Assembly: GCA_964270895.1 (NCBI GenBank)
Contig: OZ185443.1
Reading direction: 5' to 3' (one strand)
Origin: Podarcis filfolensis
Lineage: Eukaryota
DNA: 64,000 nt
The position numbers were made by a program, and so were the translations under genes. Below, in pieces: positions 1-44,865 of the stretch (position 1 is its first letter; every line of letters starts with the position of its first letter). The notes beneath the pieces were generated by a model. That model worked only from the letters and a program-made list of their open reading frames with translations. It did not search any database and was not told where the DNA came from.

Positions 1-351
1 CTTTCAGTGGGGAAAGCTTTTGCTTTTATATTTTCGTATTTCCACCCAGCCTCTCAAAAATATTTTACCCATCTCTTGTGGTTTCTTCTTCCATTTTCTC
101 TTCCATGGCCATGTACATTCACTTTTTTGTCCTGTTTCTTCTGATATCCCCCCTTTTCCATTCCCGGTTTGTCTGTTGTTGATTATGTTATATATTAGCC
201 TTTTACCTCTCTAATTTCCTTCAACATCTCCTCAGTTCCTTTTCCCTTAGCGGAGGGAGACATTTCCCTCCTCTCAACTGCCAACCTCTCTGTCTCCCCG
301 GCCCCATTGTCTCAGCATGGAAGGAGTTATGGGTGCTGGCATGAGTATATT
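1..351. repeat. Third (partial) copy of the local duplicated unit also found at ~6890-7250 and ~9320-9665
   Basis: Near-identical text in three places, e.g. CCCCCTTTTCCATTCCCGGTTTGTCTGTTGTTGATTATGTTATATATTAGCCTTTTACCTC. Ends at GGGTGCTGGCATG(A/G)GTATATT, where it fuses to the RAPGEF2 duplicate. Confidence 0.9.
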
Positions 352-1559
352 TTTCCCAAGTAGTTTATAATATTGCAACTGAAGCTAAGTTTAAGCCACT
401 AAAGAATGAATTTTAAAAGATCTTGGGGGTTTTAATCTCAGTTCAAAATGACACCTGCATTTGCAGCATCACAAACGTATGTTCTTGTATACAATTTTGT
501 GAAGTAAAACTAAAAGTGCATTATATTATTTTATATTATATTTAGCAACTGACAAATGCAGTCACTCATAAACAAAAACACTGAGATTATGCACCATAAA
601 ATTGTAGGTCTTTTCTGAACTGCAATGTTCAAGCAGTATTTGTGAGTTGAAGAATCATCAAAAGATTATGGTAGCAGTGGTATGGCTTTCCTGTCTTATC
701 AAAAGTGTTCTCAGATCTATTACAACATTGCTTTCCAAACACTGTTGGAGTAACAGACACTTCTATAAACAAGGACCATTTTTAGTGCAAAGATGTGGCT
801 ATGATGATCAGTAAGTGTTTGTTACTGCCAGATGGAAGTATTGTAATGAGTAATACAGTAAAGTCTATTCAGAAACTGCAGCTGTAAAATGCTGTGAGTC
901 ATTCCCTTAGTATACTAGCAAAAGAAGCATGTTATTACCAGAGGTTTAGAAGAGACATAACCAGCTCATTTGGGTGCACTGGTGATATTGATTATAAAAG
1001 CCCTCTGTTGTCTGAAACATAGATATCTGACTTTCAGCCTTGCTTTCCATAGTTAGTTGAAATGGTCAAGAAAAATGTCTGAATTCAATGATCCTAACAT
1101 TAAATGTTTTAGAGCTGCAAACAATTTTTTACAGAGGCCACCAACTGTCAAATCTACTTTTCTCTCTCAGATGCCCTAATCTTACTGCCCTTTACAAGAA
1201 GTATTAGTTTCCCTTTTCATTAATTATTTTTATCTGGAGTACTGTAGCCTGGTGCATCACAGCTACATTTCCACCTACTCTGAAATTTAAGTGCAGATTA
1301 GGATATATTTGAGGTCTGCTGGGGATTGCTTTCCTTCAAGTGGCTTCCCTGTAAGACTGAGATGGAATAGTTGACATGATTGCACTTGTAGGTGTGTGCA
1401 CCACTTTATATCTTAATACAGGGTGATTAATAATGAAATATACCGTTTCAACACACCATAAAAAAGAAGAATGTAATATATATTACCTGTAACAGAATTG
1501 CAGGGGAATGTTTAAAGTTTTTTTAGAAACAGTCACAGATGTTCTATATGTGCACCTAT

Positions 1560-1868
1560 TGTCACACATCGAACCGGTAATCCTTATCTGCTGAAACATG
1601 ACTCACCCTACGTGCTGATTTTCCCGGGCTTCGTTGAATGATGGTGCAAACACTACTGGCTTCTTCCGATACACACGGTTGTCCAGGACTTCTAAGTTTG
1701 CACAATCAGCCTGTAGTTTCACATTTTTTATGCCAATTGTAGATACATTTTCTGCTTGGAGGTTTTTCCCCCGAATCACAACCAAAAATGCCATCACACA
1801 ACAGTTACAGATTCCATTTTGCTCAATTCAAGAACACGAAACACCTTCTCCACTGCAGACGCAGCCAT
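1560..1868 (-). pseudogene. Degraded N-terminal (HTH DNA-binding) part of a Tc1/mariner transposase
   Basis: MAASAVEKVFRVLELSKMESVTVV*...(frameshift)GEKPPSRKCIYNWHKKCETTG*LCKLRSPGQPCVSEE...IQRSPGKSARRVS resembles the recalled N-terminus of DD37D/DD41D-like transposases (WxxxFxxTG...SPGRP...RSPxKS). Contains stops and a frameshift and lies inside the TIR element. Confidence 0.75.
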
Positions 1869-1947
1869 TTTGCCTGACTAGTCACATGAATCGCATGCTA
1901 TCGCCTATGTCACTTCCCTCAGTAGTGGAACACAAACTTTATGAGTA

Positions 1948-2189
1948 CACTGGTACCTCGGGTTAACAACTTAATTCGTTCTGGAGGTCTGTTCTTAACC
2001 TGAAACTGTTCTTAACCTGAGGTACCACTTTAGCTAATGGGGCCTCCCGCTGCCGCTGCGCCACCGCGGCGCGATTTCTGTTCTCATCCTGAAGCAAAGT
2101 TCTTAACCTGAGGTACTATTTCTGGGTTAGCGGAGTCTGTAACCTGAAGCGTATGTAACCTGAAGCGTCTGTAACCCGAGGTACCACTG
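1948..2189. mobile_element. Tc1/mariner (Tigger-like) MITE nested in the 1419-2285 element
   Basis: TIRs CA(C/G)TGGTACCTCGGGTTA / TAACCCGAGGTACCACTG; TA flanks at 1946-47 and 2190-91; internal AACCTGAAG repeats; second copy at 5606-5818. Confidence 0.88.
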
Positions 2190-3130
2190 TACATCTACCT
2201 CACGGTTCGCAGTTATGATCCGTGTCGTTGCCTGTTACTGTCTTACAGCATCTGGAAACTGTATACTTCATTATGAATCACCCTGTATATTAAACCTTTG
2301 CCCAACTAATTTGTAAAGATCCCTCTACCTGAACTGCACATTTCCTCTCAACAAATTCAACTAAGGAAAATCTAAGCTCTAGTAAACATCTTACATAAGG
2401 TTGCAACCTGAAACTTAATGCCAAAATAAAAAAGGCAAGGCAGTAATCTATTCTCTGGTTCAAAATTCCAATCTGGCAAAACACTGAAAAGGCTATCAAA
2501 GCTTGGAATATGACTTTTTCACCATACAGAATAATTGCGAAGGAAATTTTTCATTCTAAGTTCATGATCTGTATTGCCATGAACATCCCCATACTAAAAT
2601 GTTGAATTACAAATCCACTAAACACAACAAGCATTTTTTGTTCCTTCTCTACTCCCCCAAGATCTATGTAACAGCAATTCTGACAGGTTGAGTTCTTTCT
2701 GCTCTGGTACATTCGATTTCCTGAATGCCTCTCCCATCTCCAACACAGTCCAAAGTAGCAAGAAAACTATTGAGACTTTACATTTTCTGAAGTTTCAAGT
2801 ATGAATTGTGGCTTAAGATTATAGCCCAACTTTCTTTAAAGCCCTCAAGGGAGCATTATACGTTAATGTTAAATAAATAGAGTACATAAAACTGATTCAA
2901 AAAGAAACACCACTAAAGAAAAATGCCTAGCAGTGTATACTAGAAGTGATTTTAATGTGCTTGTACCATTTTACTTGGTTGTAAACTGCCTGGTATGTAT
3001 CTTTTTATGACAGGTGGTATATAAATGGTTTACAATAGATAAAACAATAATACTTGTATACAATAATCAACAAATATCATACAATATAGTTACTTCATTT
3101 CTCCTGTCTATAAATAAGCAATACTTTGTA

Positions 3131-3602
3131 TTGTTGTTGTTGTTGTTTAGTCATTTAGTCGTGTCTGACTCTTTGTGACCCCATGGACCAGAGTACGCCA
3201 GGCACTCCTGTCTTCCACTGCCTCCCGCAGTTTGGTCAGACTCATGTTTGTAGCTTCGAGAACACTGTCCAACCATCTCGTCCTCTGTCGTCCCCTTCTT
3301 CTTGTGCCCTCCATCTTTCCCAACATCAGGATCTGTTCCAGGGAGTCTTCTCTTCTCATGAGGTGGCCAAAGTATTGGAGCCTCAGCTTCACGATCTGTC
3401 CTTCCAGTGAGCACTCAGGGCTGATTTCCTTAAGAATGGATACGTTTGATCTTCTTGCAATCCATGGGACTCTCAAGAGTCTCCTCCAGCACCATAATTC
3501 AAAAGCATCAATTCTTCGGCGATCAGCCTTCTTTATGGTCCAGCTCTCACTTCCATACATCACTACTGGGAAAACCATGGCTTTAACTATACGGACCTTT
3601 GT
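3131..3602 (-). mobile_element. 5'-truncated BovB (RTE clade) LINE
   Basis: Uninterrupted RTE C-terminal ORF (KVRIVKAMVFPVVMYGSESWTIKK...WCWRRLLRVPW...LRLQYFGHLMRR...HGVTKSQTRLND*), (CAA)n tail, target duplication ATACTTTGTA, empty site near 35632. Confidence 0.95.
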
Positions 3603-4009
3603 ATACTTTGTATACTTTGTATACTGTTCACTAATACTGAATGTGAAGCTTATTGACCGCATGTGTCTCCTTGTCAGTCTCTTAACTCCACATTTGGAGA
3701 AAATAATTTTCCTGTCTTATTACCTACACCCCAAGAGATATTTATCCAGAAATTCTACCTTGAATTGTTCTACTTAGTTTTGGCTGCTTCTCAACTATTT
3801 TCAGGTTCCAGGGACAACTACATCCATTTCCATTACCCCAGCCCTTTTAACATTGATTTGCATGCCCCCACTATCTGCACAGTGACAATGATAAATAACT
3901 GCTAACTAATAATAATGGTACAAATTTATTGCAAAGTATTTCAGTAGATCAGACTATTTATGTGTCCTAAAAAGAAGAAAAACAGAGTATTTCTCTGTGA
4001 ATTTTCTCA

Positions 4010-4109
4010 GTGTGATTTGCCAACCGCCCACTGCGTCTTGGTTGTCGAACGTTTTGGAAGTCAAACAGTTTTCCAGAACAGATTACGTTCAACAACCGAG
4101 GTTCCACTG
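4010..4109. mobile_element. One-ended Tigger-like MITE remnant
   Basis: Ends in AACCGAGGTTCCACTG followed by TA, the same TIR class as the 1948-2189 MITE; no matching left TIR. Left boundary approximate. Confidence 0.6.
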
Positions 4110-4500
4110 TATTTTAAAAAGAAAGGGGAACAGAAATAACACTAGTATGGCCTTTGTATCCAATAGGATGTGCACACTTTGCTTTTGTGCTTGAATAGCT
4201 GCACCCTCATGGTACAAGCAGCTGTTAGATTTAATTGCAGAAAAGCGAGGGTAATCCAAATGTAGACTTGGAAACTGCACTGTTCTGGGACGTAAATAAA
4301 TGCCACGAATAATTCCGTATTAAAACTGTAGTACTTAACAACAAACACAAGAGGTCTCCTTAACTATGTATTTCAGATGCTGCTTTATCTCCAGTTAGCA
4401 CACCAACACCAAATATATATTCTGCAAGAACTTTTTTTAAAATACTGCACAACATACCATTTGGTAAAATCTTAGAATTACATAAGAACTTGCTGAAGAC

Positions 4501-4870
4501 TAGGGGTGCGTCGAAATTTGGTTCAGTTTGCATTTTGCGATGAAGCTACCTAATTTACCTTTCAAGAAACAATATGTGAACCCAAATACAGCTGTCCTGT
4601 AAAATTCACACTAAGTGTATATTAGGAGACAGTGTACATAAAAATGCACATACCCATGAAAATAACATGCAAAACACCTTATACTGTATCTTGAAAGGAT
4701 GTATATATTAGTCAAAACTGTGTGCAAAATGTATTTATTAGGAGAAATGGACTGAAATACTAATCTTTGTGGGAATGTTAAAAAAAATGCAATCTGATGT
4801 GAAAATATGGTGAACTGAATTTAAGATCCGGAAAATGAGAAAGTTGAAATAGGCAAATTTTCCATCCCTT
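4501..4870. mobile_element. hAT-like MITE (degenerate)
   Basis: Ends TAGGGGTGCGTCGAAATTTG / CAAATTTTCCATCCCTT; candidate 8-bp TSD CTGAAGAC / CTGAATGC (imperfect). Confidence 0.5.
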
Positions 4871-5463: not shown

Positions 5464-5608
5464 GGGGACGCGGGTGGCGCTGTGGGTTAAAGCACAGAGC
5501 CTAGAGCTTGCCGATCAGAAGGTCGGCGGATCGAATCCCCGTGACGGGGTGAGCTCCCGATGCTCGGTCCCTGCTCCTGCCAACCTAGCAGTTCAAAAGC
5601 ACATCAAA
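5464..5608 (+). mobile_element. Squam1/Sauria SINE, 5' half
   Basis: GGGGACGCGGGTGGCGCTGTGG...GATCAGAAGGTCGGCGGATCGAATCCCCG...AGCAGTTCAAAAGCACATCAAA matches the recalled lacertid Squam1 head and the copy at 40524. Confidence 0.88.
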
Positions 5609-5818
5609 CTGTTCTTAACCTGAAGCACCTGAAACTGTTCTTAACCTGAAGCACCACTTTAGCTAATGGGGCCTCCTGCTGCTGCCACGCCGCCGGAGCA
5701 CGATTTCTGTTCTCATCCTGAAGTAAAGTTCTTAACCTAAGGTACTATTTCTGGGTTAGCGGAGTCTGTAACCTGAAGGGTATGTAACCTGAAGCGTCTG
5801 TAACCCGAGGTACCACTG
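5606..5818. mobile_element. Second copy of the Tigger-like MITE lacking its left TIR
   Basis: Collinear with 1990-2189; right TIR TAACCCGAGGTACCACTG plus TA. Confidence 0.88.
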
Positions 5819-5943: not shown

Positions 5944-6454
5944 TAAAGCAATCTCTACTAAAGCATCGGATTTTTGTATCAGATACGTATTTTACCACAT
6001 AGACCTTGAGAAGCAACAGAAAAATCTGAACAGACAGATGGCAAAGTGTGCTAATTCCACCACATAAGCCCATCTGAAAACATCAGAAAGCTGTGCTTTT
6101 AAATATAGACTGTCAGCATTCCAGCTTTACATAAATATACAACACAGAGAAAAAGGTTGTGTATGTTTTTCTGTATATCACAGCATAACCAATATGAAAG
6201 TTAGCTGAAGCTCAGTCCATTTTTTATAAAGCAAGTTTCCAGGAAGGTACACCTTCAGTTTACTTCCTCCCTCTCCAAAATGGATGACCATAGGCTTGGC
6301 AGTCTGTCATAGCTGCTGCTTTTGTGATATATTCTAGCTTCCCTTTCACCTTCTAAATAAAGGGATGGCTTTGCAGCAAGCCAGCTTCCCGATTCATTCA
6401 CACACTCTTCTAGGCATACTGCTAGGAGACAGTGTCCTAAAGTGACTAAGGCTG

Positions 6455-7935
6455 CAGCCCTATTCCTTCCTAACAGGGAGAAAGCTCCATTATACACACT
6501 GGGACTTACTTCTGAGTATACATGTACAGGATATATGAAAGGTTTTATACTTCACCAGTTGGATTAAAAGGAGCATATAGTATTATTTAGGATTAACTAG
6601 ATCATAAATTATTAAACTGCTTATCCCCAGGCCCACTAAGATGGCTGAACATGACTAAGACCCACCAGTCACAAAATGGTGGTGCAGGGGCAGAAGAAGT
6701 TACAAAATGGTGGCAAGTCAGACTTTGGCACAAGGAGCTGGCAATCACTTGCATGATGTCCTACTGATATCAAATCAATCTTTGGAAATGGCTATTTTTT
6801 ACCTCAGCATTTTCCTTGCAGCAAGGAATCCACTACGTCAGTTTTCCTCGTGCTAAATACAGGCACTTTTTCTGGTGGCATTGGGAAAGCAGATCCAGCT
6901 TTAAGTGCGGAAAGCTTTTGCTTTTATATTTACATATTTCCACCAAGTCTCTCAAAAATATTTTACCCATCTCTTGTGGTTTCTTCTCCCATTTTCTCTT
7001 CCATGGCCATGTACATTCACTTTCTTGTCCTGTTTCTTCTGATATCCCCCCTTTTCCATTCCCGGTTTGTCTGTTGTTGATTATGTTATATATTAGCCTT
7101 TTACCTCACTTTCTAACTTCCTTCAACATCTCAGTTTCTTTTCACTTAGCAGAGGAAGACATTTTCCTCCTCTCCCCTGCCAACTTTGTTTTCCCTGCCC
7201 CGTTATCTCAGCATGCAAGGAGTTTTGGGTGCTGGCATGGGTATATTGAACACATTTAGTGAAGGATTTTGTTTTAAAATAAGCTTCTGTATCATGTATT
7301 TGTACATTAACAGATATTTTAGGCTATATATTTTCTGGTGGGAGTGTTTTCTTGCAGGAGGGGAGCTGACAGGAAAAAAATAAAAATCACCTTTAAGGAC
7401 AATCAAAGATGAAGGAGAAGAATGTTTGGAGGGGCTTTTGACTTTGCAGCAGAGGGATGGGAGGGGGGACGGTTGTGGGGAAAGCATCCATGTTGAAAGA
7501 ATAGTAACTCTGGCCAGAGAATAAGAGATTACATTTACTGCTGGAATATCATCTTGACTGTGAGTCCTGCAAGCCCTGCTCCCTGCCTTCTTCCAACTGT
7601 CCTGGGAATGACTGCAGGTAGAAATGATGAGGCTGCTGAACAGACTCTGGGTGGGGGCATTGCTTAGGGATTTTTTGCAGAGGGGGTGTTATTGTTGCTG
7701 TTATTGATATTAATTTGTGTAGCTTTATTTTGCAGCTTTATTATGATTTATGTGGAAATTGTTCAGTTTGGTTGTGTACTTTTTGATGTTTTGATTATCC
7801 CTTCTGACTACTTTTGCTGTATTTTGAATTGTGCATTTCTTTGCATGGCATAAGCCACCTGAAGCATGGCTATAACTGGAAAGGTGGCATGCAAATAAAA
7901 TGATGTATGTATGTATGTATGTATGTATGTATGTT
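6455..7935. repeat. Local tandem duplication, copy A
   Basis: Collinear with 7955-11315, from CTGCAGCCCTATTCCTTCCTAACAGGGAG to the (TATG)n end. Confidence 0.9.
7905..7932. repeat. (TATG)n microsatellite at the copy A/B junction
   Basis: TGTATGTATGTATGTATGTATGTATGT. Confidence 0.9.
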
Positions 7936-8328
7936 TACTGCTTGGAAACCTATTCCTGCAGCCCTATTCCTTCCTAACAGGGAGAAAATTCTATTATACA
8001 CATTGGGACTTACCGTACTTCTAATTATATATGTACAGGATTGTGCTGTAATGTTAAAAGAAATACAACTGACTGTATTACATTATAAATCCACCCTTCC
8101 TACAAGGATGATGAATGGGTGACAATATTTACAGAAGCAATATATAAACTGTGCTGATCTCTGTAAACAAAAAACAAAAAATACACGTAATAAATACACT
8201 ACATAATTTATCTCAGTAATCCTCAAATTCTGTAGCACAGAACATCTTTAGTACATATAACTGATAACTCTATGTCCACTTTGGCAAAACAAAAAACAAA
8301 AATACCACAACCAAAGCATAAACAAACC

Positions 8329-8464
8329 CATGGACAGGGAACTGCAGTTCTTCCAGATGTTTCTGGACTACAACTCATATCATCCCTGCTCATTGGCCAT
8401 GATGGCTGCGACACGTGAGCGTTGAAGTTCATCAGCATTTTGAGGGCCACAGATCCCCCATTCC
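8329..8464. mobile_element. Common lizard palindromic hAT-type MITE (degenerate)
   Basis: CCAGATGTTTCTGGACTACAACTCATATCATCCCTG...CAGCATTTTGAGGGCCACAGATCCCCCA matches a recalled abundant squamate MITE. Confidence 0.55.
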
Positions 8465-9710
8465 TACTTTAAATTGTTAAAGTAAGAACTTGGCTGTAGA
8501 AGAATTCCCACCACCGCTACCCCCCATAGAAAGATTTAAGGAGATTGCTGGATTTTGACCGTAATAAATTTGTGCAGCCTTTGCAGTTAGAATATCAAAG
8601 TGAAGCACTGCTGTCAAGCACACAATTTCTCATTGGCAGGCTGCAGTGTGTGTATTGATTCAGTCCACCTAACTCCATGCTTTTAAGATACTGACACACT
8701 TCATCTGAAAAGGTGTATTTCACAGCCGAAGGAAAGTGACCTTCATGAACAGTATTTTAAAAACTATAAGGATGCAACTTCAGAAGTGTGCATTCATATG
8801 TTGTTCACGCGCGCACACATATATCTATATTATACATATATGTTATTATCATGCTATTATTACAGAATCAGAAGCAAACTTTGGTTATCGGATGGTACAT
8901 GGAAGTATAATGTATACAGAGTAGGAATTAAAATAAACACAATGTGTAAACTGGTAAAAATATATGAATGAAGCTTTTATGCTTCACTATTTGGATTAAA
9001 AGGAGCAGATAGTATTATTTAGGACTAACTAGAACATAAATTATTAAACTGTTTGCTCCCAGGGCCCACTAAGATGGCTGACAATGACTGAGGCCCAGCC
9101 GTCACAAAATGGTGGTGCAGGGGCAGAAGTTACAAAATGGTGGCAAGGCAGAGTTTGGCACAAGGAGCTGGCAATCTCTTGCATGATTTTCTACTGGTAT
9201 CAAATCAATCTTTGGAAATGGCTATTTTTTTACCTCAGCATTTTCCTTGCAGCAAGGAATCCACCACATCAGTTTTCTTCGTGCTAAATAGTGGCACTTT
9301 TTCTGGTGGCATTGGGAAAGCAGATCCAGCTTTAAGTGGGGAAAGCATTTGCTTTTATATTTCCGTATTTCCACCCAGTCTCTCAAAAATATTTTACGCA
9401 TCTCTTGTGGTTTTTTCTCCCATGGCCAAGTACATTCACTTTTTTGTCCTGTTTCTTCTGATATCCCCCCTTTTCCATTCCCGGTTTGTCTGTTGTTGAT
9501 TATGTTATATATTAGCCTTTTACCTCACTTTCTAACTTCCTTCAACATCTCAGTTTCTTTTCCCTTAGCAGAGGAAGACATTTTCCTCCTCTCGCCTGCC
9601 AACTTTGTTTTCCCTGCCCTGTTATCTCAGCATGCAAGGAGTTTTGGGTGCTGGCATGGGTATATTGAACACATTTAGTGAAGGATTTCATTTAAAAACA
9701 AGCTTTTGTA

Positions 9711-10308
9711 CAGGGTGGATAAAAATCAATGATTTAAATTTTAAAAGATCAGATTTTTTATTTAAATCGGATTTTTTAAAATTTAAATCGGATTTTTAAA
9801 ATAAAATGCTTTTGGAGGAAAAATCTTTCTAAAGATATTTTTCTGTTTAAGTTACAGCATAGTCCAAAGGCTATACTGGAAATACGGATTTGTTTTAAGT
9901 TTTTCATGTGTGCTAAAACTCAGTCTAGGTTTGTTTATTTTTTAAGCTCAACCACATCAGTTAACAAACATGGATACATATGCTATAATATTATTGATTT
10001 AGTTAAATAAATTGTTTAAATTGTTATTAAGGAAACGATTATTTTTCTCCTTCCAATAAAGTACAAATATAAAGTTATTAAACCTCACAATAATTTCATA
10101 ATTATCTGTCTATGTATTTCTAATAGTATAACTCAGTGACTTTTTTATATAAGTGTAAAAACTAATCTGAAAATTTATTATTCCAGAAATGAAACCTTCA
10201 TCTGGTTGTAAATATTAAGATTAAACCACCAAGAATGAGTCTTTCTGTAAAAAAAGTGTGATGTAAATCAAGTCTTACTGACTAGTAATTTAAATCAAAT
10301 CCACCCTG
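9711..10308. mobile_element. hAT-superfamily non-autonomous element
   Basis: TIRs CAGGGTGGAT / ATCCACCCTG; 8-bp TSD CTTTTGTA / CCTTTGTA; single site CTTCTGTA in copy A near 7283. Confidence 0.88.
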
Positions 10309-10615
10309 CCTTTGTATCATGTATTTGTACATTAACAGATATTTCAGGCTATATATTTTCTAGTGGGAGTGTTTTGCTGCAGGAGGGGACTTGACAGGAA
10401 AAAAATTAAAAGCACCTTTAAGGACAATCAAAGATGAGGGAGAAGAATGTTTGGAGGGGATTTTGACCATTGCAGCAGAGGGATGGGGGGGGGGGAGAAA
10501 GCACCCATATTGAAAGAGTAGTTATTCCGGCCAGAGAATAAGGGATTACATTTACTGCTGGAATATCATTTTGACTGTGAGTCGTGGAAGGCCTGCTCCC
10601 TGCCTCCCTGCCTTC

Positions 10616-10901
10616 CTTTCTTTCTTTTTTTAAATAAACATTTTTATTCGATTTTCCAATACATTTATTTTTAAAAAATTCATATACATATTCATATACA
10701 GAGATTCCTCCAAATCTCAGGACTAACCCCCCCACCCCTCCCTGGATCCCCATTTTAAACATTTTAAACTGCATCTTCTTCCAGACTCTAGTATATCAAT
10801 CGATATTTCCCATGGTCATTTTTACACTACAAGTGAAATAAAAATCCTGCCAATGTTTCCATCTGCTTACAGTGGTTTTTATGTAAACATTTTTATTTGA
10901 T
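10616..10901 (-). mobile_element. 5'-truncated L1-like 3' end
   Basis: Flanked by the 12-bp direct repeat CTCCCTGCCTTC (10604-10615, 10902-10913); A-rich tail with AATAAA on the minus strand; absent from copy A. Confidence 0.6.
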
Positions 10902-10980
10902 CTCCCTGCCTTCTTCCAACTGTTGGGGGGGGGCACTGTCTAATGATGAGGCTGCTGAACAGACTCTGGGTGGGGGCATT

Positions 10981-11047
10981 GTTAGCTGCCCTGAGCCCAA
11001 CTTCAGCTGGGGAGGGCCGAATATAAATAAAAGTTTATTTATTTATT
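10981..11047 (+). mobile_element. L2-type 3' tail fragment
   Basis: GCCCTGAGCCCAACTTCAGCTGGGGAGGGCCGAATATAAATAAAAGTTTATT resembles the reverse complement of the L2 tail at 23460-23510; absent from copy A. Confidence 0.7.
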
Positions 11048-12028
11048 ATTGCTTAGGGGTTTTTGCTGAGGGGGTGTTATTGTTGCTGTTATTGATATTA
11101 ATTTGTGCAGTTTTCTTTTGTACCTTTATTATGATTTATGTGGAAATTGTTTGGTTTGGTTTGGTACTTTTTGATGTTTTATTTATCCCTTATGACTACT
11201 TTTGCTGTATTTTGAATTGTGCATTTCTTTTCATGGTGTAAGCCACCTGGAGCATGGCTATTAACCGTGGAACGGTGGCATGCAAGTAAAATGATGTACG
11301 TATGTATGTTTACACTGGCGACTCACAGTAATCCTCTCAAAGTCAAGTTTTAATTAAATGGTAATTCTGTATCTTGGCTTTATCAGCACGGGTGTGTGTG
11401 TCATATGGTATAATGCTTCTTCATTTTTTTTTAATTGGTTCACATAGAAAATTGCCATGTCAGGAAGAAGACTAGGTTTTAACAACTGTATTTCCCTGGC
11501 ACCTGCTTTTCTATTTACAGGGATTTCCATTATTACTGACGAGCACTCAGACATCTGAACCCCCACCTGAAATAGTACTGCTCAGATACAGTTTTATTGA
11601 GAATGGGGCTTAAGTGGCTTTGCAAATCTGTCAACATTGACTGTGAATTGTTGGAAACATAGTTAGGAAAGAAAGGAGCACCAAGCTGAGAAAAGGCAAC
11701 AAAAGGGTTGAAGGCTGCATTCTTCTAGAGTTGGTTTTAAAACAAACATGATGCCAAGGAGCTGAGTCTTAATTAATTAGCATCATTTAGTGAACATTAG
11801 CGTAGCTGTCGTTATATAAGGCCAGGGCTTTACAAGTCTTGGTGAAATGTCATTGTATAAGCTAAAGATCTGCTGGTGTCGCTATACTAGCTCAGGACAG
11901 CCTCTAGTAGTGGCACAGAGACTAGCAAGCACAGCTGCACATGCAGTTCTCTCCCATATATATGAATAGCAAAGCCTAAGAAAACATCCAAGACAGGACA
12001 AAACAATACGGAGATCATTAACATTATA

Positions 12029-12034
12029 TTTATT
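12029..12034 (-). terminator. RAPGEF2: Polyadenylation signal AATAAA of RAPGEF2
   Basis: TTTATT on plus, at the end of the conserved-looking UTR block. Confidence 0.75.
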
Positions 12035-12090: not shown

Positions 12091-12238
12091 NNNNNNNNNN
12101 NNNNNNNNNNNNNNNNNNNNNNNNNNNNNNNNNNNNNNNNNNNNNNNNNNNNNNNNNNNNNNNNNNNNNNNNNNNNNNNNNNNNNNNNNNNNNNNNNNNN
12201 NNNNNNNNNNNNNNNNNNNNNNNNNNNNNNNNNNNNNN
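12091..12238. other. Assembly gap or masked run (148 N) inside the 3'UTR
   Basis: Run of N. Confidence 0.99.
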
Positions 12239-12317: not shown

Positions 12318-12675
12318 CTTGTGATACAGCTAGGTTTGTTCTGTCTTGCTATATGCACATGTGGTCCATACCCTATATAATGAAACTGGCAAATGCATAT
12401 TACATGTAAAATTACAAATGTATAATTGACAATGTGATATATGAGCAAATAAGACAAAAGCCATGAATACAGGAGAAAGAGAATAATTAAATAAAGCACT
12501 GACATAATTCAATACAGTGAAAAAACACTGCAATTTGATCTTTAGAAGTTGAAGTTATTTACGTTTATCTACTGATCAATATGATCAGCTGAGTTCAATG
12601 AAAAAAAATTCCAAGACCAGCAGTTCCTCACATCTGAGTACTGCTCAGATTGGCAGCCTTCACTTTTCCGGAGTC

Positions 12676-12683
12676 TGTGCAAA
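12676..12683 (-). promoter_or_regulatory. miR-19 8mer seed match (TTTGCACA)
   Basis: TGTGCAAA on plus, in a conserved-looking UTR block; Rapgef2 is a reported miR-19 target in mouse neurogenesis. Confidence 0.6.
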
Positions 12684-13559
12684 ACCAACACAAAAACAGA
12701 AAGTAGGGGGTGTCATTTCATTTCAGTCACTCAAGGATTAATAGCAGCTGTGAGCATGTGATTGCTACCCGATTGGCCTTCTCTATACATGCAGTGTTCC
12801 ATAAAAGTAATCCACAGTTGTGAATGTTTTTGCACTGCTAAGGCTGGTAGATCTTCAGAGATTGCTCCTCTTTATAAAAAGGTATCACTTCCTAATGCAA
12901 AGCCAATAAAAAGAGCCTATTACATCACTATTAAGGGTTGGCATTAGTTGCAGTGTCCTGCATTGCCTTAACTGTAGTATTATCCTCATAATTTGTGTGT
13001 GACAACTGTTAGTGTATTACAAGGATGATAAAAAGGAAAAAAATATTTGAAGTAAAAGATGGAATTGCCATTTGTCAAAGTGCGACAAATGTTTTTATTC
13101 ACCATTCTGTATTCCTCAAGGCACAGGAAAGGGATGCAAAATGGATTTGCATCTATTAAAATGCAAGACTAATTGTCCTGCATCAATATAGATGCAAATT
13201 AGCAATACCAGCAATTCCAAAACTGATCAACTGTGCTCCAAGTGTGGAACACTAAAAATGAAGGTTGAAGGTCAATGAAAGGCCGAATCCTCCCTATAGA
13301 CCACCCTTACTTAGATACACTATAGCTTTTTAAAAACCGCTTCTTAAAAAGTACAAAATAATACTGAAATTATGCAAGTGTAACTCCCCCCCTCCGAATA
13401 CAACATTTAGAGTAGCAACAAAGGCATTGTAAACAAGCAAACAAGCACTGTGTACTTGAAGGAATTCAACATGTTTCTCTTAGTAGGGTAAAGGCCAAAT
13501 GTAGCTTGTCAACTAGTTGATTTCATTATCCCAACGAGGTGAAGTGCACGGATTGTGAT

Positions 13560-14745
13560 CAGCGGCAGGGCATGACCCGGTGGTGCCTGGGGTGGGTGGG
13601 AGCGTGCCACACAATGGCAAAAGGGCACGCTGTGGGGTGGGGTATGCCATCGGAATGACTGCGTCCTTCTCGGCCGTCCTTCCTCGGATCTTAATCACAA
13701 TCAGAGGCGTAGAGTGAGGGGTGCTGGGGGGGCGTCGCCCCAGGTGCAATCTTGTGAGGGGGGTGCTGGGTGCCAGAGCTGCTGCATCCTTCTCAGCTGG
13801 AGGGCAATAACTTCACAGTATTTCACATGCAGGGGAGAGATGTGGCAGCTTCATGCACCAGCCTCACACTGCTTTTGTGGGGATTGTGGGACCTGTAGGG
13901 CGCTCAAGCCACTGCGTCCCCCTCAGCCACCCTTTGGCTAGAGGGCACCCAGAAGAGATGTGGCAGCTTGGGTACCCTGCAAAAGCAGCGAGAAGCCGCA
14001 AAAGTAGTGTGGAGCCGGCGCATGGAGCCGCCACATCTCTCCCTTGCATGTGAAATACTGTGAAGAAATTGTCCTGGCACTTTTCAAACTGTGTTGCTTG
14101 AAATGCACAGTGCAGCGTTTTCCCCAGCTACCGCTGTTGCCGTCTTCCACATCACAGTATCATTCATATTACAGCTGTATGAGAGGACTAAAAAATTCTA
14201 AATAGGCCAAGGCTTTACAACCGAGCGAGGGTATCTCTTCTCCATCATTGAACCAGCCAGAAATACATGTCAGCATTTTTCTTAGTTGGGAATCAAAAAC
14301 GTGTACTTCCAACATCTACACATCACAATGAATAACTGACTGTACTTCCCCAATGCCTGGAAGCATTTAAAACCTTCCTCAGATCTTAATCACGATTACA
14401 GGCATAGGTTGGGGTGTGCTGGGGGGGACATCGACCCGAGTGCAGTCTTGGGAGGGGGGCACAGGGTGCCAGAGCTGCTGAATCCTTCACAGTTGGAGAG
14501 ATGCAGCAGTGCCGTGTGCCGGCCCCACACTGCTTTTGAGGGCAGCGCAGGACCTGCAGGGTGCCCAAGCCACCACATCTCTTCTGGGCGCCCTTTAGCT
14601 GGAGGGTGGCTGAGGGGAACACTGAGGGTCCCATGTTGCCTGCAAAAGCAGCACGGGGCCAGCGCATAAAGCCGCCACACTCCTCTGGCTGAGAAGGAAG
14701 CAGCAGCTCCGGTGCCCTCAGCAGCCCCCACCCCACTATACCTCT
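13560..14745. mobile_element. Composite hAT-like insertion in the 3'UTR: MITE copies plus inverted host DNA
   Basis: Starts CAGCGGC and ends CTATACCTCTG; candidate 8-bp TSD ATTGTGAT (13552-59) / AATGTGAT (14747-54). Palindromic MITE at ~14395-14745, second rearranged copy at ~13702-14040, inverted host copy at 14041-14393. Confidence 0.75.
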
Positions 14746-15131
14746 GAATGTGATTAAGATCTGAGGAAGGTTTTAAAAAATGCTTCCAGGCATTTGAGAA
14801 GTGCAGTCAGTTATTCATTGTGATGCGTAGATGTTGGAAGTTAGAATGATACTGTGATGTGGCAGACAGCAACAGTGGTAGCTGGGAAACTGCTGCAATG
14901 TGCATTTCAAGCAACACGGTTTGAAAAGAGCCAGGGCAATTTCTTCACAGTATTTCACATGCAAGGGAAGAAGAGTGCGGGAGGAAGGGGGAGAAGCCCC
15001 ATGCTGCTTTAAGGCAGGGAAGGAGGCAAACAGGTCCACCATCCTTTAGAGTTCCAAGGCTCCTATACTAGGGGCGTCGTCTTGTGCTCTCCTTTAAGTT
15101 GGCTCACGCAGGATCCAGAAAGCCCCAGTTC

Positions 15132-15157
15132 TTAGACGGCAGAGACTTGCTCATCTT
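15132..15157 (-). CDS. RAPGEF2: RAPGEF2 terminal coding exon: (E)DEQVSAV*
   Basis: Acceptor TGTTTGCAG, phase 1 entry, TAA at 15132-34; C-terminal S-A-V class I PDZ ligand. Confidence 0.96.
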
Positions 15158-16666
15158 CTGCAAACACAACAGGATAGGAGGTAAATACATCTTAAGGTAT
15201 TTAGAACTAAAATAGCCAATGTATTTATATGTTAGGCTTGTTCACTTGAAACACTAAACCCATAGTGTAGCATGCACATTCACTCCCCATGCCCTCTCCT
15301 GTGCAGCCAGGATCAGGACTTTGGAAAAGAAGGTAAATACTAGCCATGAATTCTCGCTAGTTGGTACATAGGAATCAGATATTAGAGTTTAACTAACCAA
15401 TTTATGTTTTGAAACAAGCCAGCTTCATAACCTATGGTTTTAAAGTTGGTCTGTTTAGAACAGGGCTGGCAAACCTGTGGCACACTGACTAATCTTGACC
15501 CACAAGGCCATTTCGCACACCCACTTGTCCATCAGTTAGTATCACTGATTGAAACCAGCTGCTTATTACAAGGACAAAGTACCTCCCTCTGTTATCTGTT
15601 TCAGCAGCATGTTCACCTGGTGAGCAGAGAGTTATAGGATCTGGCTGGTAACAGGCATACACAGCCAAAGCCCTGCAGTACACTTTAAACCACTGGTTGG
15701 GTTGTTTGCAAAAGGGCTTTCAAATATCCCTTGATGGTGCTTTGAAGTCCCAAAAGTGCAGGCTTCAAAGCACAATGCTACCTGATGCCCCTATGACATC
15801 AGGTGATTGACAAGTGGACAGCACTACTCACATGTCAAATTACAACCTCCAGAGGTGGGGAGATAAGGATTTGGTTTACCAGTCAGAAAAATGTCCCCAG
15901 CCCACTTTAGAAACTAACCAGAGTCTGTTTTAAGCTCCAATCTCTAGCTGATCAGTAATAAGTCAGGTTTCTTTAACACTGGAAGTAAATACTAGCAAAA
16001 GCCTTCTCAGGCTGTCCAGCAGAAGCTGAAGGGATGAAGCAAGAGCCTTTGTTTGAGTTTGTGTACATAGTGCTAAACCACAATTTTACTTTTGCATGTG
16101 AACCAGCTCACTGTGTTTACATCTCTCTCAAGTAAATACTGAACCTTATGTTTCTTTCAGCATGGCTCTTCCATTTACCCTTTAGATTAAAATACCATTT
16201 GGCTGCTTTGCCATCTCCACTTTAATTTTACCAAATCAGACTGTTTTTAACATTCAACTCAGTAAAGTTCTAATGTTTACACCTTTGCTACAAACATTAC
16301 ATGGCCCTGCACTTGACTCAATATTAAGTTAAAATCCTGAGAGCATTGATGTGCTGCAGAGGAAGTGCAAACTTTACAGCTTTTTAGTCTACAAAGTATT
16401 TGAAGACCTCTTCGATTTTACAGCCCATAGAAAATCCTCCCTCTCAGAACCAAGATATACACCACATAAAACAATCAATAAATGATTGGATGAGCTGATA
16501 GCACTTCCGTCATATGAACAAGAAACAAAGTCAGAAACACTTCTGAGCTCAGAGCTGGATAAAAGTACACGCCCTCTCTTGCACCTGCATAAATGTTCTG
16601 GATGCAAAAGAACTTATGGAAACAAACCCTTAACTTATTATTTTCAAAATGTTATAAGATGTTTAC

Positions 16667-16972
16667 CATCCTCCTCTGTGGAAAACCCTTGAGACTGATA
16701 GTGAACCAGATGTGGGTCTGACTCATTTGGTTTGTGCCACTGAGGTTTGCCCACAGGCCTGCTAGATGGAGGACCCTGTGGTTGCTGCTGTGAAGCTGAA
16801 GTCCCAGGGGCTTCACTTGACCGTGCCACCATCCTAGACCTCTGAAGTGCCACGTTGTAATCCGGAGGTTTTCGGGCTGGGTGGGAAACTCCTTCAGCAA
16901 AGTCAGCAATAGGTATTCCTACATAACCAGGCGGGGTTGGTGGTGGTTCACGATAGCGGCCCTCTTTTCGAG
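16667..16972 (-). CDS. RAPGEF2: RAPGEF2 exon: (A)[16 protein letters not shown]...PPDY...GFSTEED
   Basis: 306 nt, AG/GT, phase 1-1; two PY motifs. Confidence 0.97.
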
Positions 16973-17291
16973 CTGCAGTAAAATAGTGCATCATCAGCAA
17001 TCATAATCATTTACATATATTTGTTACAACTACTATCTATGCCTGTACTTAGTTCTATTATGTCATAATCCTGGTAGCTCTGATGTGCTTCCAAGGGAGT
17101 TGAACAACTTGGCATTAAAAACAACCACAGTATGGACATGAGGCAGCCCAAAAGTAAAGGCATTTACATTTCACTGAGTCCAAATGGGAGTTGAGCACAT
17201 TCTTAAAACTTTCCCATTCAAATCAATGGAATCTAAAACTGCTTAATTCTGGCTGGATTATACAGGCACATCCATACCAAATACCTATACA

Positions 17292-24734: not shown

Positions 24735-25195
24735 CTTTAAATAAAAAGTAGAATTAAGATTACAGTTAAGACTACCTCAAGAGTACTTGATTTTATATTA
24801 AACGGTGTCCGGAAGAATGATCAATGATGGAAAAGAGATATCCTCTCTCGGTTGAAAAACCTTGGAATTTGTTAGTCCTCTCATTCAGCTATAATATACT
24901 ACCACAAACTATAGTAAAATGATGCCCTGATCAGCAGTTGGAGAGCCAATTAGGTAATGTATGCCATTTAAGAAACAAGTACCACATATGCCAACTGTAA
25001 TATTGTCTACAATTTGCAATGGCATGGAATAACTTGTTTTCTAGTGATCAGCTTGATTAGAAACACATACTTCTCTCAATGATGCTGTGGCCAAGCCTAA
25101 GCCTGAGGGACAGTTAAGCTGTAGGCTAAATAAAGATAAATTAACAGCTCATTTGCCATGACTGAGGTGCACACCCAATTAAGAAAAATGCTCAC

Positions 25196-25419
25196 ATGTA
25201 TTGCTGGCTGGTTCACATTGTAGAGAGAGTGCCTGAAGGCTCTCTTCATCCATTTCCAGATCCAAATTGGAGAGATACTGCTTGACTTTCCGAGCCATCT
25301 GAGCATCTTCATATAGCTTTTTGGCATTGAGGAAGGAGCTGCGGCGGACCCGCTTTTTATGTCCACCTGTTTGTGCAACATCAAGGACTGCTGCATTTGT
25401 ACTGCCTTGACTGAGAGAC
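25196..25419 (-). CDS. RAPGEF2: RAPGEF2 exon: (G)[16 protein letters not shown]...[18 protein letters not shown]...EPASNT
   Basis: 224 nt, AG/GT, phase 2-1. Confidence 0.97.
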
Positions 25420-29235: not shown

Positions 29236-29447
29236 CTTCATGGAGGAACGTAAGGTCCTTTTTGATTACAGGGAACAATGGAATAATAGGAGGCTGTAGA
29301 TTTTGGCTATTCAGGACATTGCGATATTTTGCCATGTTCCTAGATGGATCAAATAAATCCTGAAGATCTTGAAACAATTTTTCATATTTGCTTGGAAGTT
29401 TTTCCCAAGTAGTTCGTAGTCTTGCAACTGGAGCTAAGTTTAGGCCA
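29236..29447 (-). CDS. RAPGEF2: RAPGEF2 exon (CDC25): (S)[17 protein letters not shown]...[19 protein letters not shown]
   Basis: 212 nt, AG/GT, phase 2-1. Confidence 0.97.
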
Positions 29448-32322
29448 CTAAAGAATGAATTTTAAAAGATGTTGGGGGTTTTAATCTCTATTCAAAATGA
29501 CACCTGCATTTGCAGCATCACAAACATATGTTCCTGTATACAATCTTCTGAAGTAAAACTAAATGCATATCATATCATATTTAGCAACGGACAAATGTAG
29601 ACACTGGTAAACAAAAACACTGCTTTCAGAGATTATGCACCATAAAATTGTAGGTCTTTTCTGAACTGCAATGTTCAAGCAGTATTTGTGAGTTGAAGAA
29701 TCATCAAAAGATTATGGTAGCAGTGGTATTTCCTGTCTTACCAAAAGTGTTCTCTGATCTATTACAACATTGCTTTCCAAACACTGTTGGAGCAACAGAC
29801 ACTTCTATAAACAAGGACCATTTTTAGTGCAAAGATGTGGCTATGATGATCAGTAAGTGTTTGTTACTGCCAGATGGAAGTATTGTAATGAGTAATACAG
29901 TAAAGTCTATTCAGAAACTGCAGCTGTAAAATGCTGTGAGTCATTCCCTTAGTATACTAGCAAAAGAAGCATGTTATTACCAGAGGTTTAGAAGAGACAT
30001 AACCAGCTCATTTGGATGCACTGGTGATATTGATTATAAAAGCCCTCTGTTGTCCGAGACATAGATATCTGACATTCAGCCTTGCTTTCCATAGTCAGTT
30101 GAAATGGTCAACAAAAATGTCTGAATTCAGTGATCCTAACGTTAAATGTTTTAGAGCTGCAAACAATTTTTTACAGAGGCCACCAACTGTCAAATCTACT
30201 TTCCTCTCTCAGATGCCCTAATCTTGCTGCCCTTCACAACAAGTATTAGTTTCACTTTTCATTAATTATTTTTATCTGGAGCACTGGTGCCTGAGATTAT
30301 TGACCACCTTTGATCCCCAAATCAAGTTTCATCAAGTATATTAGCAGAATAAGTTACAGTAATTTAACACAGAGGCATGAAATTTAACAAGGCATGAAAG
30401 TGACCAGTCTCAAATGCAGGCAGACAATGTAACTTATTTTACTTAATTTGAGTTGGTTAAAAGAATTCCTGGCTTGGAACTCTATCAATAATGCCCCCAA
30501 ATCACAGTGTTCCATGCCCAGGCTTTTCTAAATTGATGCTAAATATAACTTTCCGAAATCACTGTCACCCATAGTGAAAAGGCAAAGGAGCATCAGCACT
30601 GTGAGAAAAGTGGGCATCCTGAGTGTACTGATTAAAAATCCCTATCTTGCCTATGTTCACGTATCAGACTACAGGAAGGTTTAGTAGAAATGGCATGAAG
30701 TTGTGGAGTGAGGAGTGCTTGAGAGAGGTATTCGGTCTGTGAGGGGGATTCTGTCAGGAGGGTTCGTTCAGACAAGTGGTAGAGCTGAGGAGAGCCAAGA
30801 ACTCTCAGTATATGCTCTAAGGTTCTGAATTGCAGAACACTGTTAAAATAGAAAAGGCACAGTCTCCCACGGTGTTTACAGGAAAAAGGGTCCTCAGAAG
30901 GAATACTCTGACATGAAAGGGCAGTAGTGATTCCCAGGCCAAAGAGGATTTGGGGGTCTGTAAGGAAACAGTCCAGTTAAAATGCTAAATTCCTGAAGTG
31001 TGTGTGGAAAAGTCTGATCTATGAAAGATGTGTAAAAGAAAGTAACCTTAAGCCTGAACAGCATACAGCCTATAACTTGAAACAGTATACGTTTTAATAA
31101 AAAGCAACAGCACTGTGCCATGAATAATCTCACTGTTTGATATATTTCTGTGGAAGAAAAAGAACCAAAAACTCCTTGTTTACATCTGTTATAATAAAGT
31201 TTGTTTGCAACCTGTTTTCCCCAAAGAAAAACCCACTGTCGCTCGTGATTCATTCTCTATTGGGGGAATTCACCTGAGGGAAGGGAAACTGAGGGCTGGC
31301 ACAGCGGTGCCAGGGAGGGAAGAGTGCTGTTGCGTTGTCCCAGAAGTCCCTCCACATCGCCTGCTAGTTTCAAATGGTAATATGTCAAGACCAATGCTAT
31401 CAATACTTGCTGAGATTGCTAATAAATGCAACAAAGCAAAGGTTTCCTTACCATGGAAGCCTTCAAGTACAGTCTAGGGATTGTAATTGCATTCAAAAGC
31501 CGAATAGCAGGCTCACATGAGGCCTAAACAACAACCAAATGTGCTTCATACAAAGTGACAATCTGTTTTGAAACGACCCTTTCAAAAGGAAGGTAACCGG
31601 AAAATTCAGAAGTGTACTTTTTGTGGGGGTAGGAAGGAGGAGAACCAAAGATTTAAGGCTGCCTTGTCTAACAATTAGCTTCTACTGCATTAAGTTAAAA
31701 ACCTGTGTAACCTATAACTGGGATTTTGAATGCCAACATGCAAACCTTTTAAATGATACTAAATGAACTGGATTCATACAGGACTGTGTGCAGTCTTTCA
31801 CACATAAAACATACTCCATGGTTGCATACTAAGTGGAAACAGAGATAGATAAATGACTTCTTTTGTAATTTTGCTTTTTCCAAGTCTGTTCCAAAGGATA
31901 TTTTGATTTCTAGAGATAACAAATGCTTATAAAAATGACAAACACAACAAAGACTAATACATTTATAATGACACACGTGATCATGGAGTAGAGTCTACTT
32001 TCATCAGATATATCATTATGATGTTAGCAATGACAAGCTTGCAATGCTAATTTAAACAGCTTTTCATGGAAGAATCCTCTAGCCTTTCAACCAGTCTTGC
32101 TCTTTTTGGATTAGGATTTTGTCTAAAGCTGCTGCTGAGGACTGTTAAGTTAATGAAATATTACTATTGTAGTATTAAATTACTAATTCATAAAACAGTA
32201 AAATGTACACATAGTATCTTTCTTAAAATTTAGTATCATCATTATGAAGCATCTATTTACACTTTATTTCTTATAAATTGTATGCAAAATCATTGGGGGG
32301 GGGGTGATCTAGTCTTGTTTAC

Positions 32323-32706
32323 CTTATTATTGCAAACATGGAGTTGAAGTTCTTGCATTCCCTGCAGTGCAATGCTATCTTAATGAAGTGCTTAATTATC
32401 TTCATCCTTTTCAGCTGGTTGGTTTCTCGCAGAATCTCAGATGCCACCCAAAAGGTTTCTTGGTTTATTACTTCTTCAAACTTTTTCAAGTTAGTACAGC
32501 TAGACTTAGATTTCAGTTTAAACAAGTCATCTATGTATTCTGTAGGTTCAATGTTACGGAACAGTTCAAAGTTACGCATAGAGAGTTGGGTTGCCACCTC
32601 AACAGTACTGAGTTGCAATAAAGAAATTTGACTCTCTCTCAGCAATTCCTGAGCATCTTCATCTGAACACAAGGTTTCTGTCTCCATGTTGTTCTTCAGA
32701 TAATAC
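32323..32706 (-). CDS. RAPGEF2: RAPGEF2 exon (CDC25 start): (R)[12 protein letters not shown]...NFNSMFAII
   Basis: 384 nt, AG/GT, phase 2-2. Confidence 0.97.
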
Positions 32707-32861
32707 CTGGGAGAGGGGGGAAGAGGGAATAAAGTTTTCTAGAAATGAAAACACTAATAGTAATGGAAAGCAAAGGTAGCTTGCTTAGAATTTAAAAATC
32801 AGTATATTTAAGAAGTACATTCAATTATATTCTGAAATGGCAGATGATGTACGAGTCTCAC

Positions 32862-33102
32862 CTTCCACTAAGCTGTATTCTGTCAGCAAGCTTGGAAAGT
32901 TGATCTGGAAGCCTCCTCTGCTTGATTACTCCCTCTGGAGTGACTGAAACTTCACATAAAGAATATGCATCTGGGGTGGTGGTTAGAGCAAATTCTCGGA
33001 TTGCTTGAATAACCACTTCCTTTGCAGTTGTGTCCTTACTGATCATAATGTAGCGGCTTTGTTGGTCTGCCTTAAAAACCCTCAGAACCTGGTCTGGTAA
33101 AT
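32862..33102 (-). CDS. RAPGEF2: RAPGEF2 exon (RA domain): (D)[25 protein letters not shown]...RIQLSG
   Basis: 241 nt, AG/GT, phase 1-2. Confidence 0.97.
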
Positions 33103-44686: not shown

Positions 44687-44865
44687 NNNNNNNNNNNNNN
44701 NNNNNNNNNNNNNNNNNNNNNNNNNNNNNNNNNNNNNNNNNNNNNNNNNNNNNNNNNNNNNNNNNNNNNNNNNNNNNNNNNNNNNNNNNNNNNNNNNNNN
44801 NNNNNNNNNNNNNNNNNNNNNNNNNNNNNNNNNNNNNNNNNNNNNNNNNNNNNNNNNNNNNNNNN
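44687..44865. other. Assembly gap or masked run (179 N)
   Basis: Run of N. Confidence 0.99.

Follow-up and report, generated by a model that had tools for sequence, protein, structure and literature searches.

Does the 3'UTR of RAPGEF2 in the lizard Podarcis filfolensis contain an inverted copy of a part of itself and, if so, where does this copy come from and what would it do to the mRNA? The question is raised by one locus in the window, which is here the whole 64-kb stretch of DNA that was analysed. In this locus, a first-pass annotation had described an inverted repeat downstream of the RAPGEF2 stop codon, a palindromic MITE between its arms and a long fold-back dsRNA expected in the transcript, and had read the whole as a lineage-specific regulatory structure built from the UTR of the gene.

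Position of the inverted repeat in RAPGEF2

RAPGEF2 ends on the minus strand of the window and its 3'UTR runs from 15131 downward. The penultimate coding exon is contained in the ORF 16644-17000(-), whose relatives in databases include sequences named Rap guanine nucleotide exchange factor 2. A TTTGCAG acceptor (AG at 15159-15158) precedes the last exon, which begins at 15157, codes for ..(E)DEQVSAV and shows the TAA stop codon at 15134-15132 of the minus strand. No AATAAA or ATTAAA is found in mRNA sense from the stop to 13099, and so none ahead of the inserted block described below. The region of the distal poly(A) signal (12090-11995) is 93.8% identical to positions 4721-4816 of a squamate contig, L002, which has an AATAAA at 4777; a RAPGEF2 3'UTR of about 3.1 kb is expected, with the block within its first third. 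Downstream of the gene, the window contains many other duplicates of RAPGEF2 pieces (87-93%), which point to a locus with a history of complex rearrangement.

The repeat search finds three inverted matches in this 3'UTR: 14040-14124 with 14884-14968 (93%), 14120-14165 with 14844-14889 (91%) and 14305-14368 with 14778-14841 (94%). BLAST aligns 14040-14165 to 14968-14844 with 92.1% identity over 126 nt (E 8e-47), and E-values so low exclude a match by chance. Global alignment gives 92.8% identity (116/125) for the first pair of segments and 95.7% (88/92) for the second, which reaches 14397/14747, that is, 14305-14397 against 14747-14841. All three approaches place the repeats where they had been placed before, the second arm being slightly longer. 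The two arms, 14040-14397 and 14747-14968, are separated by a spacer of 349 nt and lie 3' of the stop and 5' of every AATAAA/ATTAAA signal; inverted repeats of at least about 200 nt, less than about 1-2 kb apart, are present within one 3'UTR. The earlier figure of about 170 nt between the stop and the native arm was close, the exact distance being 163 nt. The features of the region are collected in Table 1.

Table 1. Features of the RAPGEF2 3' end and of the inserted block, in mRNA order (window coordinates)
Feature	Position	Strand	Remarks
RAPGEF2 last coding exon	15132-15157	-	Sequence read; same exon end in L002 and L005
RAPGEF2 proximal 3'UTR, 163 nt, conserved, outside the duplex	14969-15131	-	Alignable to L002 and the mRNA contig L005
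Native arm, conserved UTR, 222 nt	14747-14968	-	Orthologous to L002 3040-3256 and L005 about 1170-1390
Complete GC-rich MITE, copy B, ends CAGGCATAGG.../...CCTATACCTCTG	14398-14746		Folds on itself; not in L002 or L005
Inverted copy of native 14747-14841, with inverted target site ATCACGAT against the MITE end	14305-14397		95.7%
Filler, 139 nt, splits the inverted arm	14166-14304		14166-14290 resembles RAPGEF2 intron; 14291-14304 unassigned
Inverted copy of native 14844-14968	14040-14165		92.8%, E 8e-47; also L002 3040-3169 at 88.6%
MITE inner module, copy A, own hairpin	13837-14039		Against inner part of copy B: 74.6% inverted, 62.2% direct
Direct repeat (second sense copy) of native-arm nt 1-36, with AUGUGAA	13801-13836	-	92%; matches L002 3040-3078
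MITE left-end module, copy A, starts CAGAGGCGTAG	13703-13800		81.6% to 14398-14497
Inverted copy of the native arm's final 25 nt with target site (..ATCACAAT)	13678-13702		Repeat search, alignment
GC-rich terminal module X, starts CAGCGG, left end of the block	13560-13677		Weakly similar to MITE left arm
Left target-site duplication ATTGTGAT	13552-13559		Single ATTGGGAT in L002
First AATAAA past the RAPGEF2 stop	13094-13099	-	Beyond the block; not conserved in L002
Conserved AATAAA, likely main poly(A) signal	12029-12034	-	About 3.1 kb past the stop, 1.5 kb beyond the block

Orthologous sites in other vertebrates

The orthologues L002 and L005 come from a search with the penultimate-exon ORF, after which the contigs with coding matches were compared. 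L002 is a 5.8-kb genomic contig from another squamate, whose exon is 86% identical at the DNA level, and L005 is a spliced mRNA contig from a more distant vertebrate, whose ORF ends in ...EEEEDEQVSAV and shows no intron at the last exon junction. The comparison covers these two, the contigs of P0001 and P0008 ending short of the UTR. Positions 2776-3256 of L002 align to 15230-14746 of the window with 80% identity, a stretch that contains the last exon, the proximal UTR and the entire native arm, and positions 3248-4511 align to 13559-12300 with 75%. The UTR of L005 aligns to 15159-14835 (75%), crosses the insertion point, where it is aligned with L002, and then matches 13468-13426 at the spacing of an uninterrupted UTR. 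Both contigs therefore show an empty site, in which 14747 is joined directly to 13559 without the MITE. The UTR beyond the block is alignable for more than 1.2 kb and the last intron of RAPGEF2 shows no alignment to L002.

Within the native arm, the first ~75 nt, including GCATGTGAAATACTGTGAAG, are nearly invariant in the comparison; the arm also holds the right target-site duplication AATGTGAT (14747-14754) and an AUGUGAA motif at about 14960. The proposal that the paired native segment is conserved proximal UTR is borne out, as L002 and L005 align through the arm and skip 13560-14746. On these alignments 14747-14968 is genuine conserved proximal 3'UTR, found also in an mRNA of another species, and the arm at 14040-14397 is, by the same comparison, a local inverted duplicate of it interrupted by filler. 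Since both contigs carry the arm and skip the block, 13560-14746 is an insertion specific to the lineage of the window. The arms are not two independent retroelement (SINE) copies, the native one being orthologous UTR in L002 and L005.

The same contigs bear on a different reading, in which the whole region, the native arm included, consists of nested insertions of a single transposon family and nothing was copied from the UTR. This would fit with the start of the arm (36 nt) being present also inside MITE module A (13801-13836), and with CCTTCCTCAGATCTTAATCAC, which resembles a MITE terminal repeat and is present three times. However, in L002 and L005 the arm occupies the orthologous position, in one run with the stop and the downstream UTR and without any MITE, and no other copy of the arm is found in the window; the reading is very improbable and, on the alignments, already refuted by the two contigs. 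CCTTCCTCAGATCTTAATCAC, which seems to be the outer inverted repeat of the central palindrome, was considered as the MITE terminal repeat and rejected, as it is native UTR present in L002. The proximal UTR at 14969-15131, considered as a degenerate MITE half, was likewise discarded, being conserved in L002 and L005.

Composition of the inserted block

The inserted block spans 13560-14746 (1187 bp), 385 nt downstream of the RAPGEF2 stop, and is a mosaic that combines GC-rich MITE modules with four copies of neighbouring UTR sequence and with the filler (Table 1); the left limit of 13560 in the first-pass annotation is its exact left edge. On the plus strand its edges read GG-ATTGTGAT|CAGCGG ... 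CCTCTG|AATGTGAT-TAA, while L002 reads GG-ATTGGGAT-TAA, so that an 8-bp target-site duplication, ATTGTGAT (13552-13559) and AATGTGAT (14747-14754), corresponds to a single ATTGGGAT in L002. This duplication fits nTnnnnAn. The termini of the block are of the CAG...CTG type, starting with CAGCG and ending with CTCTG, and the internal modules end in CAGAGGCGTAG and CAGGCATAGG. Lizard hAT elements have as hallmarks an 8-bp target-site duplication and a terminal YARNG, with CAGAGSCGGYCC as the terminal inverted repeat of Anolis hAT-N and NTCTAGAN, likewise nTnnnnAn, as an Anolis hAT target site (PMC3014272). The block shows the 8-bp duplication, the terminal YARNG / CAG...CTG and the empty site in a relative, and it is best described, from these boundaries, as one composite insertion of hAT-type MITE modules bounded by a target-site duplication.

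The MITE that had been proposed between the arms is present at 14398-14746 (copy B), is GC-rich and forms its own hairpin. Modules A and B are 75-82% alike, or 86% once CpG-type changes are removed, and the host-derived copies show 92-96% identity to their sources. The true MITE end is CAGAGGYRTAG. By eye, about 20 nt at the left end of module A match the right end in reverse complement; for the outermost left end of the block (module X), only about 7/11 positions match, and the block termini resemble each other poorly beyond CAG.GG. In global alignment, the left 100-nt end is about 62% identical to the reverse complement of the right one. An origin of the left half of MITE B as a recent inverted copy of its right half was rejected, given this ~62% against 93-96% for the arms. 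No further MITE copies were found within the 64-kb window, and ORF translations of the MITE and the UTR arm gave, against protein collections, nothing or low-complexity matches with E 7e-6 or weaker.

The filler that splits the inverted arm resembles a RAPGEF2 intron ~10 kb away: 14166-14251 is similar to 24897-24821 (80%) and 14249-14290 to 25215-25174 of the same intron (93%). The two intron pieces are in swapped order and overlap by 3 nt at the joint. A circular RNA as the source of this permuted filler was considered and dropped, as the source is intronic and shows no sign of a coding exon. The inverted target site lies directly against the MITE left end twice, at 13695-13702|13703 and at 14390-14397|14398.

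Occurrence of the block in DNA and RNA runs

Presence was scored as the share of sampled 31-mers found in sequencing runs, per organism label. DNA runs of organisms A (two samples), B, C, D and I contain 0.65-0.98 of the 31-mers of 13560-15131, the share of organism I coming from a second search on the block alone; with block-only 31-mers, the DNA runs of organisms D and I give 0.64-0.67. Flanks alone, without the block, could give at most about 0.22. The block is present in a number of close relatives but not in L002 and L005, which are more distant, in agreement with the lineage-specific structure that had been proposed.

These data also bear on whether the inverted arm is an assembly artefact, that is, a chimeric fold-back read or a mis-joined palindrome. 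Palindromes are classic in long-read and assembly errors, and the DNA run with the highest share of 31-mers may be the own sample of the assembly. However, an independent sample of organism A, X3, contains 0.81 of the 31-mers and, together with organisms B, C, D and I, exceeds what flanks alone allow; moreover, such an artefact would give identical arms, whereas the observed ones mismatch at 13/217 aligned sites (~6-7% divergence), and with L002 as outgroup the native arm shows 9 derived changes and the inverted copy 10. An artefact is extremely improbable, and the inverted duplication is, judging from its divergence, real and old and not an assembly fold-back.

In RNA-type runs (n=18, contig sets of 65-145 Mb) of organisms E-H, 0.11-0.30 of the block-only 31-mers are found. 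The runs of organism E contain about 0.48 of the 31-mers of 14760-15131 (by subtraction) against about 0.30 for the block. These shares are consistent with transcription through the block, short of proof. Genuine DNA may nevertheless be missing from the mature mRNA, either by a non-canonical end before or inside the block or by removal of a cryptic intron, in which case cytoplasmic RAPGEF2 mRNA would have no fold-back dsRNA. Such a loss would agree with RNA-type shares of 0.23-0.30 for the block against about 0.48 for the proximal UTR, and the weak hexamers AATGAA (14819) and AAGAAA (14945, 14283) exist; on the other side are the lack of AATAAA or ATTAAA from the stop to 13099, the block-only 31-mers in 18 RNA-type runs of four organisms, and a UTR past the block that is 75% conserved over more than 1.2 kb, with 94% in the AATAAA region, next to a last intron that is unaligned. 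We regard a block missing from the mRNA as rather unlikely: with no canonical signal before the block and conserved UTR and poly(A) signal beyond it, the block should be in the mRNA.

Origin of the block

From the junctions we infer the following order of events. The MITE would have inserted at ATTGTGAT in the RAPGEF2 3'UTR, and a replication or repair strand would then have folded back on its terminal inverted repeat: the nascent strand, with one terminal repeat just copied, would anneal to the other repeat and extend outward, giving flank'-MITE-flank. In this way the right-hand flank, that is, the target site plus 219 nt of UTR, would be copied in reverse onto the other end of the MITE, and later template switches would add the intronic filler, the 36-nt sense copy, the 25-nt copy and extra MITE pieces. 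The inverted target site that abuts the MITE left end twice suggests that the flank was copied after the MITE was already at ATTGTGAT, with the switch at the end of the terminal repeat. As expected for a fold-back, the inverted copy of the flank is joined exactly to the end of a possible priming inverted repeat (14397|14398, 13702|13703), and, as expected for template switching, the filler pieces overlap by 3 nt and 36-nt and 25-nt copies of the UTR are present. Modules A and B share 75-82% identity, lower than the 93-96% of the host-derived copies, so that a single-event history is not assured.

Instead of fold-back template switching, the hAT transposase could have built the block by alternative transposition, of the sister-chromatid or the reversed-ends type. 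The block is bounded by hAT-type ends and an 8-bp target-site duplication and contains at least two MITE-end modules, and in maize composite insertions have transposon termini around duplicated flanks joined with filler DNA, sister-chromatid transposition yielding inverted duplications (bioRxiv 10.1101/2020.08.10.245175). However, the host pieces, which include the inverted target site, stem from sequence right beside the insertion site itself and measure only 25-219 nt, against 12.8-23.6 kb in maize, and an autonomous element or a second flanking MITE is not seen in the window. Alternative transposition is unlikely here. The choice between transposition and fold-back copying bears on the origin of the block only, not on the RNA consequence.

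Predicted fold of the transcript

Folding was computed on 15131-13640 and also in a 1832-nt context. In the 15131-13640 fold, the MFE and the centroid structures both pair the two arms, and in the 1832-nt context the native arm is predicted to pair with its inverted copy with a mean probability of 0.915. The predicted inter-arm pairs are 206 (202 Watson-Crick and 4 G-U), with a longest helix of 38 bp; MITE B and MITE module A form separate predicted hairpins, the former capping the stem, and the filler forms a side bulge. The imperfect stem of ~210 bp with a hairpin cap that the first-pass annotation had drawn is thus recovered by thermodynamic folding, at ~206 bp and with the MITE hairpin as its cap. 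An Rfam scan of 12400-15400 matched no family.

By the usual definition of seed matches, the AUGUGAA of the native arm is a miR-23 site of the 7mer-A1 type. The predicted probability that this site is unpaired is 0.2-0.9 without the block and about 0.01 with it, so that burial of the conserved element, as anticipated, also follows from the model, while the second sense copy (13836-13801) is predicted to be about half unpaired. The RAPGEF2 mRNA is predicted to fold into about 206 bp of imperfect dsRNA over a conserved element.

Discussion

Taken as a whole, the explanation preferred here, that is, a composite MITE insertion with fold-back copying of the flank, a block contained in the mRNA and ~206 bp of dsRNA comparable to an inverted-Alu pair, is held with moderate confidence. 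Long 3'UTR dsRNA is known mainly from SINE pairs of primates and rodents, and mouse CTN-RNA contains an inverted SINE pair. Human inverted Alu pairs in 3'UTRs (IRAlus) undergo ADAR editing, may be retained in paraspeckles and may reduce translation (PMC526178, PMC4378195, PMC3458544, PMC11263572). Like IRAlus, the RAPGEF2 locus shows two opposed arms of ~200-300 nt in one 3'UTR, with an intramolecular long imperfect dsRNA predicted between them. In contrast to them, one arm is the own vertebrate-conserved UTR of the gene and the other is its local inverted duplicate, instead of two SINEs; a MITE hairpin makes up the predicted loop, and the structure belongs to a lizard. The predicted RAPGEF2 fold-back belongs with the known 3'UTR inverted-repeat dsRNA, and what is new is the conserved UTR of the gene itself as an arm.

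The block also shares features with three other kinds of rearrangement or element. Maize Ac/Ds (hAT) composite insertions likewise show hAT termini around duplicated adjacent host sequence and internal junctions with microhomology or short template-switch filler from nearby DNA (bioRxiv 10.1101/2020.08.10.245175), but they measure 12.8-23.6 kb, involve two elements with reversed ends and lie at a new insertion site, whereas the RAPGEF2 block measures 1.2 kb, lies at the site whose flank was copied and shows an inverted copy joined precisely to the MITE end. In templated fold-back insertions, a 3' end uses a short inverted repeat to fold back and prime synthesis, and neighbouring sequence is thereby duplicated in inverted orientation, as proposed for RAPGEF2; those at breaks are mostly 5-34 bp (PMC11724301), whereas the RAPGEF2 copy has 219 nt, a 349-bp palindromic MITE would serve as its pivot and more template jumps would come after it. 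Finally, as in MITE-derived hairpin RNAs and miRNA genes such as hsa-mir-548 from Made1, a palindromic MITE in a host RNA forms a hairpin (PMC1784062), but the RAPGEF2 element is without an Rfam match and the main duplex is host-derived flank instead of MITE.

By analogy, the block in the RAPGEF2 mRNA would act like a human inverted-Alu pair, burying a conserved element and offering a substrate to ADAR or dsRNA-binding proteins. Any such effect may be small, as both arms have decayed to the same degree. That derived changes are equally frequent in the native arm and in its copy speaks against selection, after the duplication, on the pairing or on the native element. The earlier description of the structure as regulatory is left without support by this decay (9 vs 10 derived changes), and a tolerated, near-neutral structure is the default reading, as neither symmetric decay nor ~6% divergence hints at selection for pairing. 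A more ambitious possibility, which we think quite unlikely, is that the inverted arm is a selected cis auto-antisense that would mask the conserved RAPGEF2 UTR element, including the miR-23-type site, in this lizard clade, with the 36-nt copy at 13801-13836 as an accessible relocated or back-up site. If so, RAPGEF2 output would depend on ADAR or helicase activity, and a transposon would have made a new regulatory layer from the own UTR of the gene.

Under the preferred explanation, the locus would be a clean fossil of a palindromic hAT MITE possibly triggering fold-back copying of its flank: a junction exactly at the terminal repeat, an inverted target site and templated filler tie transposon biology to replication-based rearrangement. 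The insertion is also a natural experiment, in which one lineage is predicted to sequester a conserved control element that is free in relatives. RAPGEF2 is a neuronal Rap1 exchange factor, and altered dosage could affect the phenotype; if RNA data show editing or changed expression, the locus would become a tractable case for reporter assays.

Composition of the RAPGEF2 3'UTR insertion

The inverted arm, a copy of the proximal RAPGEF2 3'UTR carried by the insertion and predicted to pair with the native segment in the mRNA, is interrupted by a 139-nt filler (14166-14304). This filler matches two intronic pieces located about 10 kb upstream (24821-24897 and 25174-25215), the order of which is swapped in the filler relative to the intronic sources, with a 3-nt overlap between the two filler pieces. 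Since their identities to the intronic sources are unequal (80% vs 93%), one of the pieces may be older or of other source. Sequence comparison identified no source for the filler positions 14291-14304. At 13801-13836 the insertion also repeats the 36 nt of the proximal UTR that are most conserved; this second copy is in sense orientation in the mRNA and includes the AUGUGAA site. In the predicted fold, around half of this second copy would be unpaired and the original element would be buried. In L005, a spliced RAPGEF2 mRNA contig of a distant vertebrate without the insertion, the gene caller of a public collection shows a 179-aa antisense ORF (964-1503, minus strand), which spans the GC-rich proximal 3'UTR and is probably spurious.

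Repeats and duplicated segments around RAPGEF2

The window contains an array of tandem repeats whose units are about 80 bp long and 84-91% alike (45722-46108), an imperfect palindrome of 177 bp and 70% self-complementarity, possibly another MITE (43610-43786), and two runs of N, one within the RAPGEF2 3'UTR (12091-12238) and the other at 44687-44865. Just past the conserved poly(A) signal, the region shows tandem-like duplicated blocks with deletions, and downstream of the gene there are duplicates of upstream RAPGEF2 segments.

Duplicated segments in the window
Feature	Segment	Counterpart	Identity	Remarks
Tandem-like duplicate blocks	6452-7918	7956-11309	83-92%	
Tandem-like duplicate blocks	1-351	6899-7247 and 9330-9666	83-92%	
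Direct duplicate pair	350-3979	29399-36051	87-93%	riddled with deletions
Direct duplicate pair	5478-5611	40524-40657	87-93%	riddled with deletions

The duplicates of RAPGEF2 segments are about as old as the UTR arms, suggesting that the RAPGEF2 locus went through a burst of complex rearrangement.
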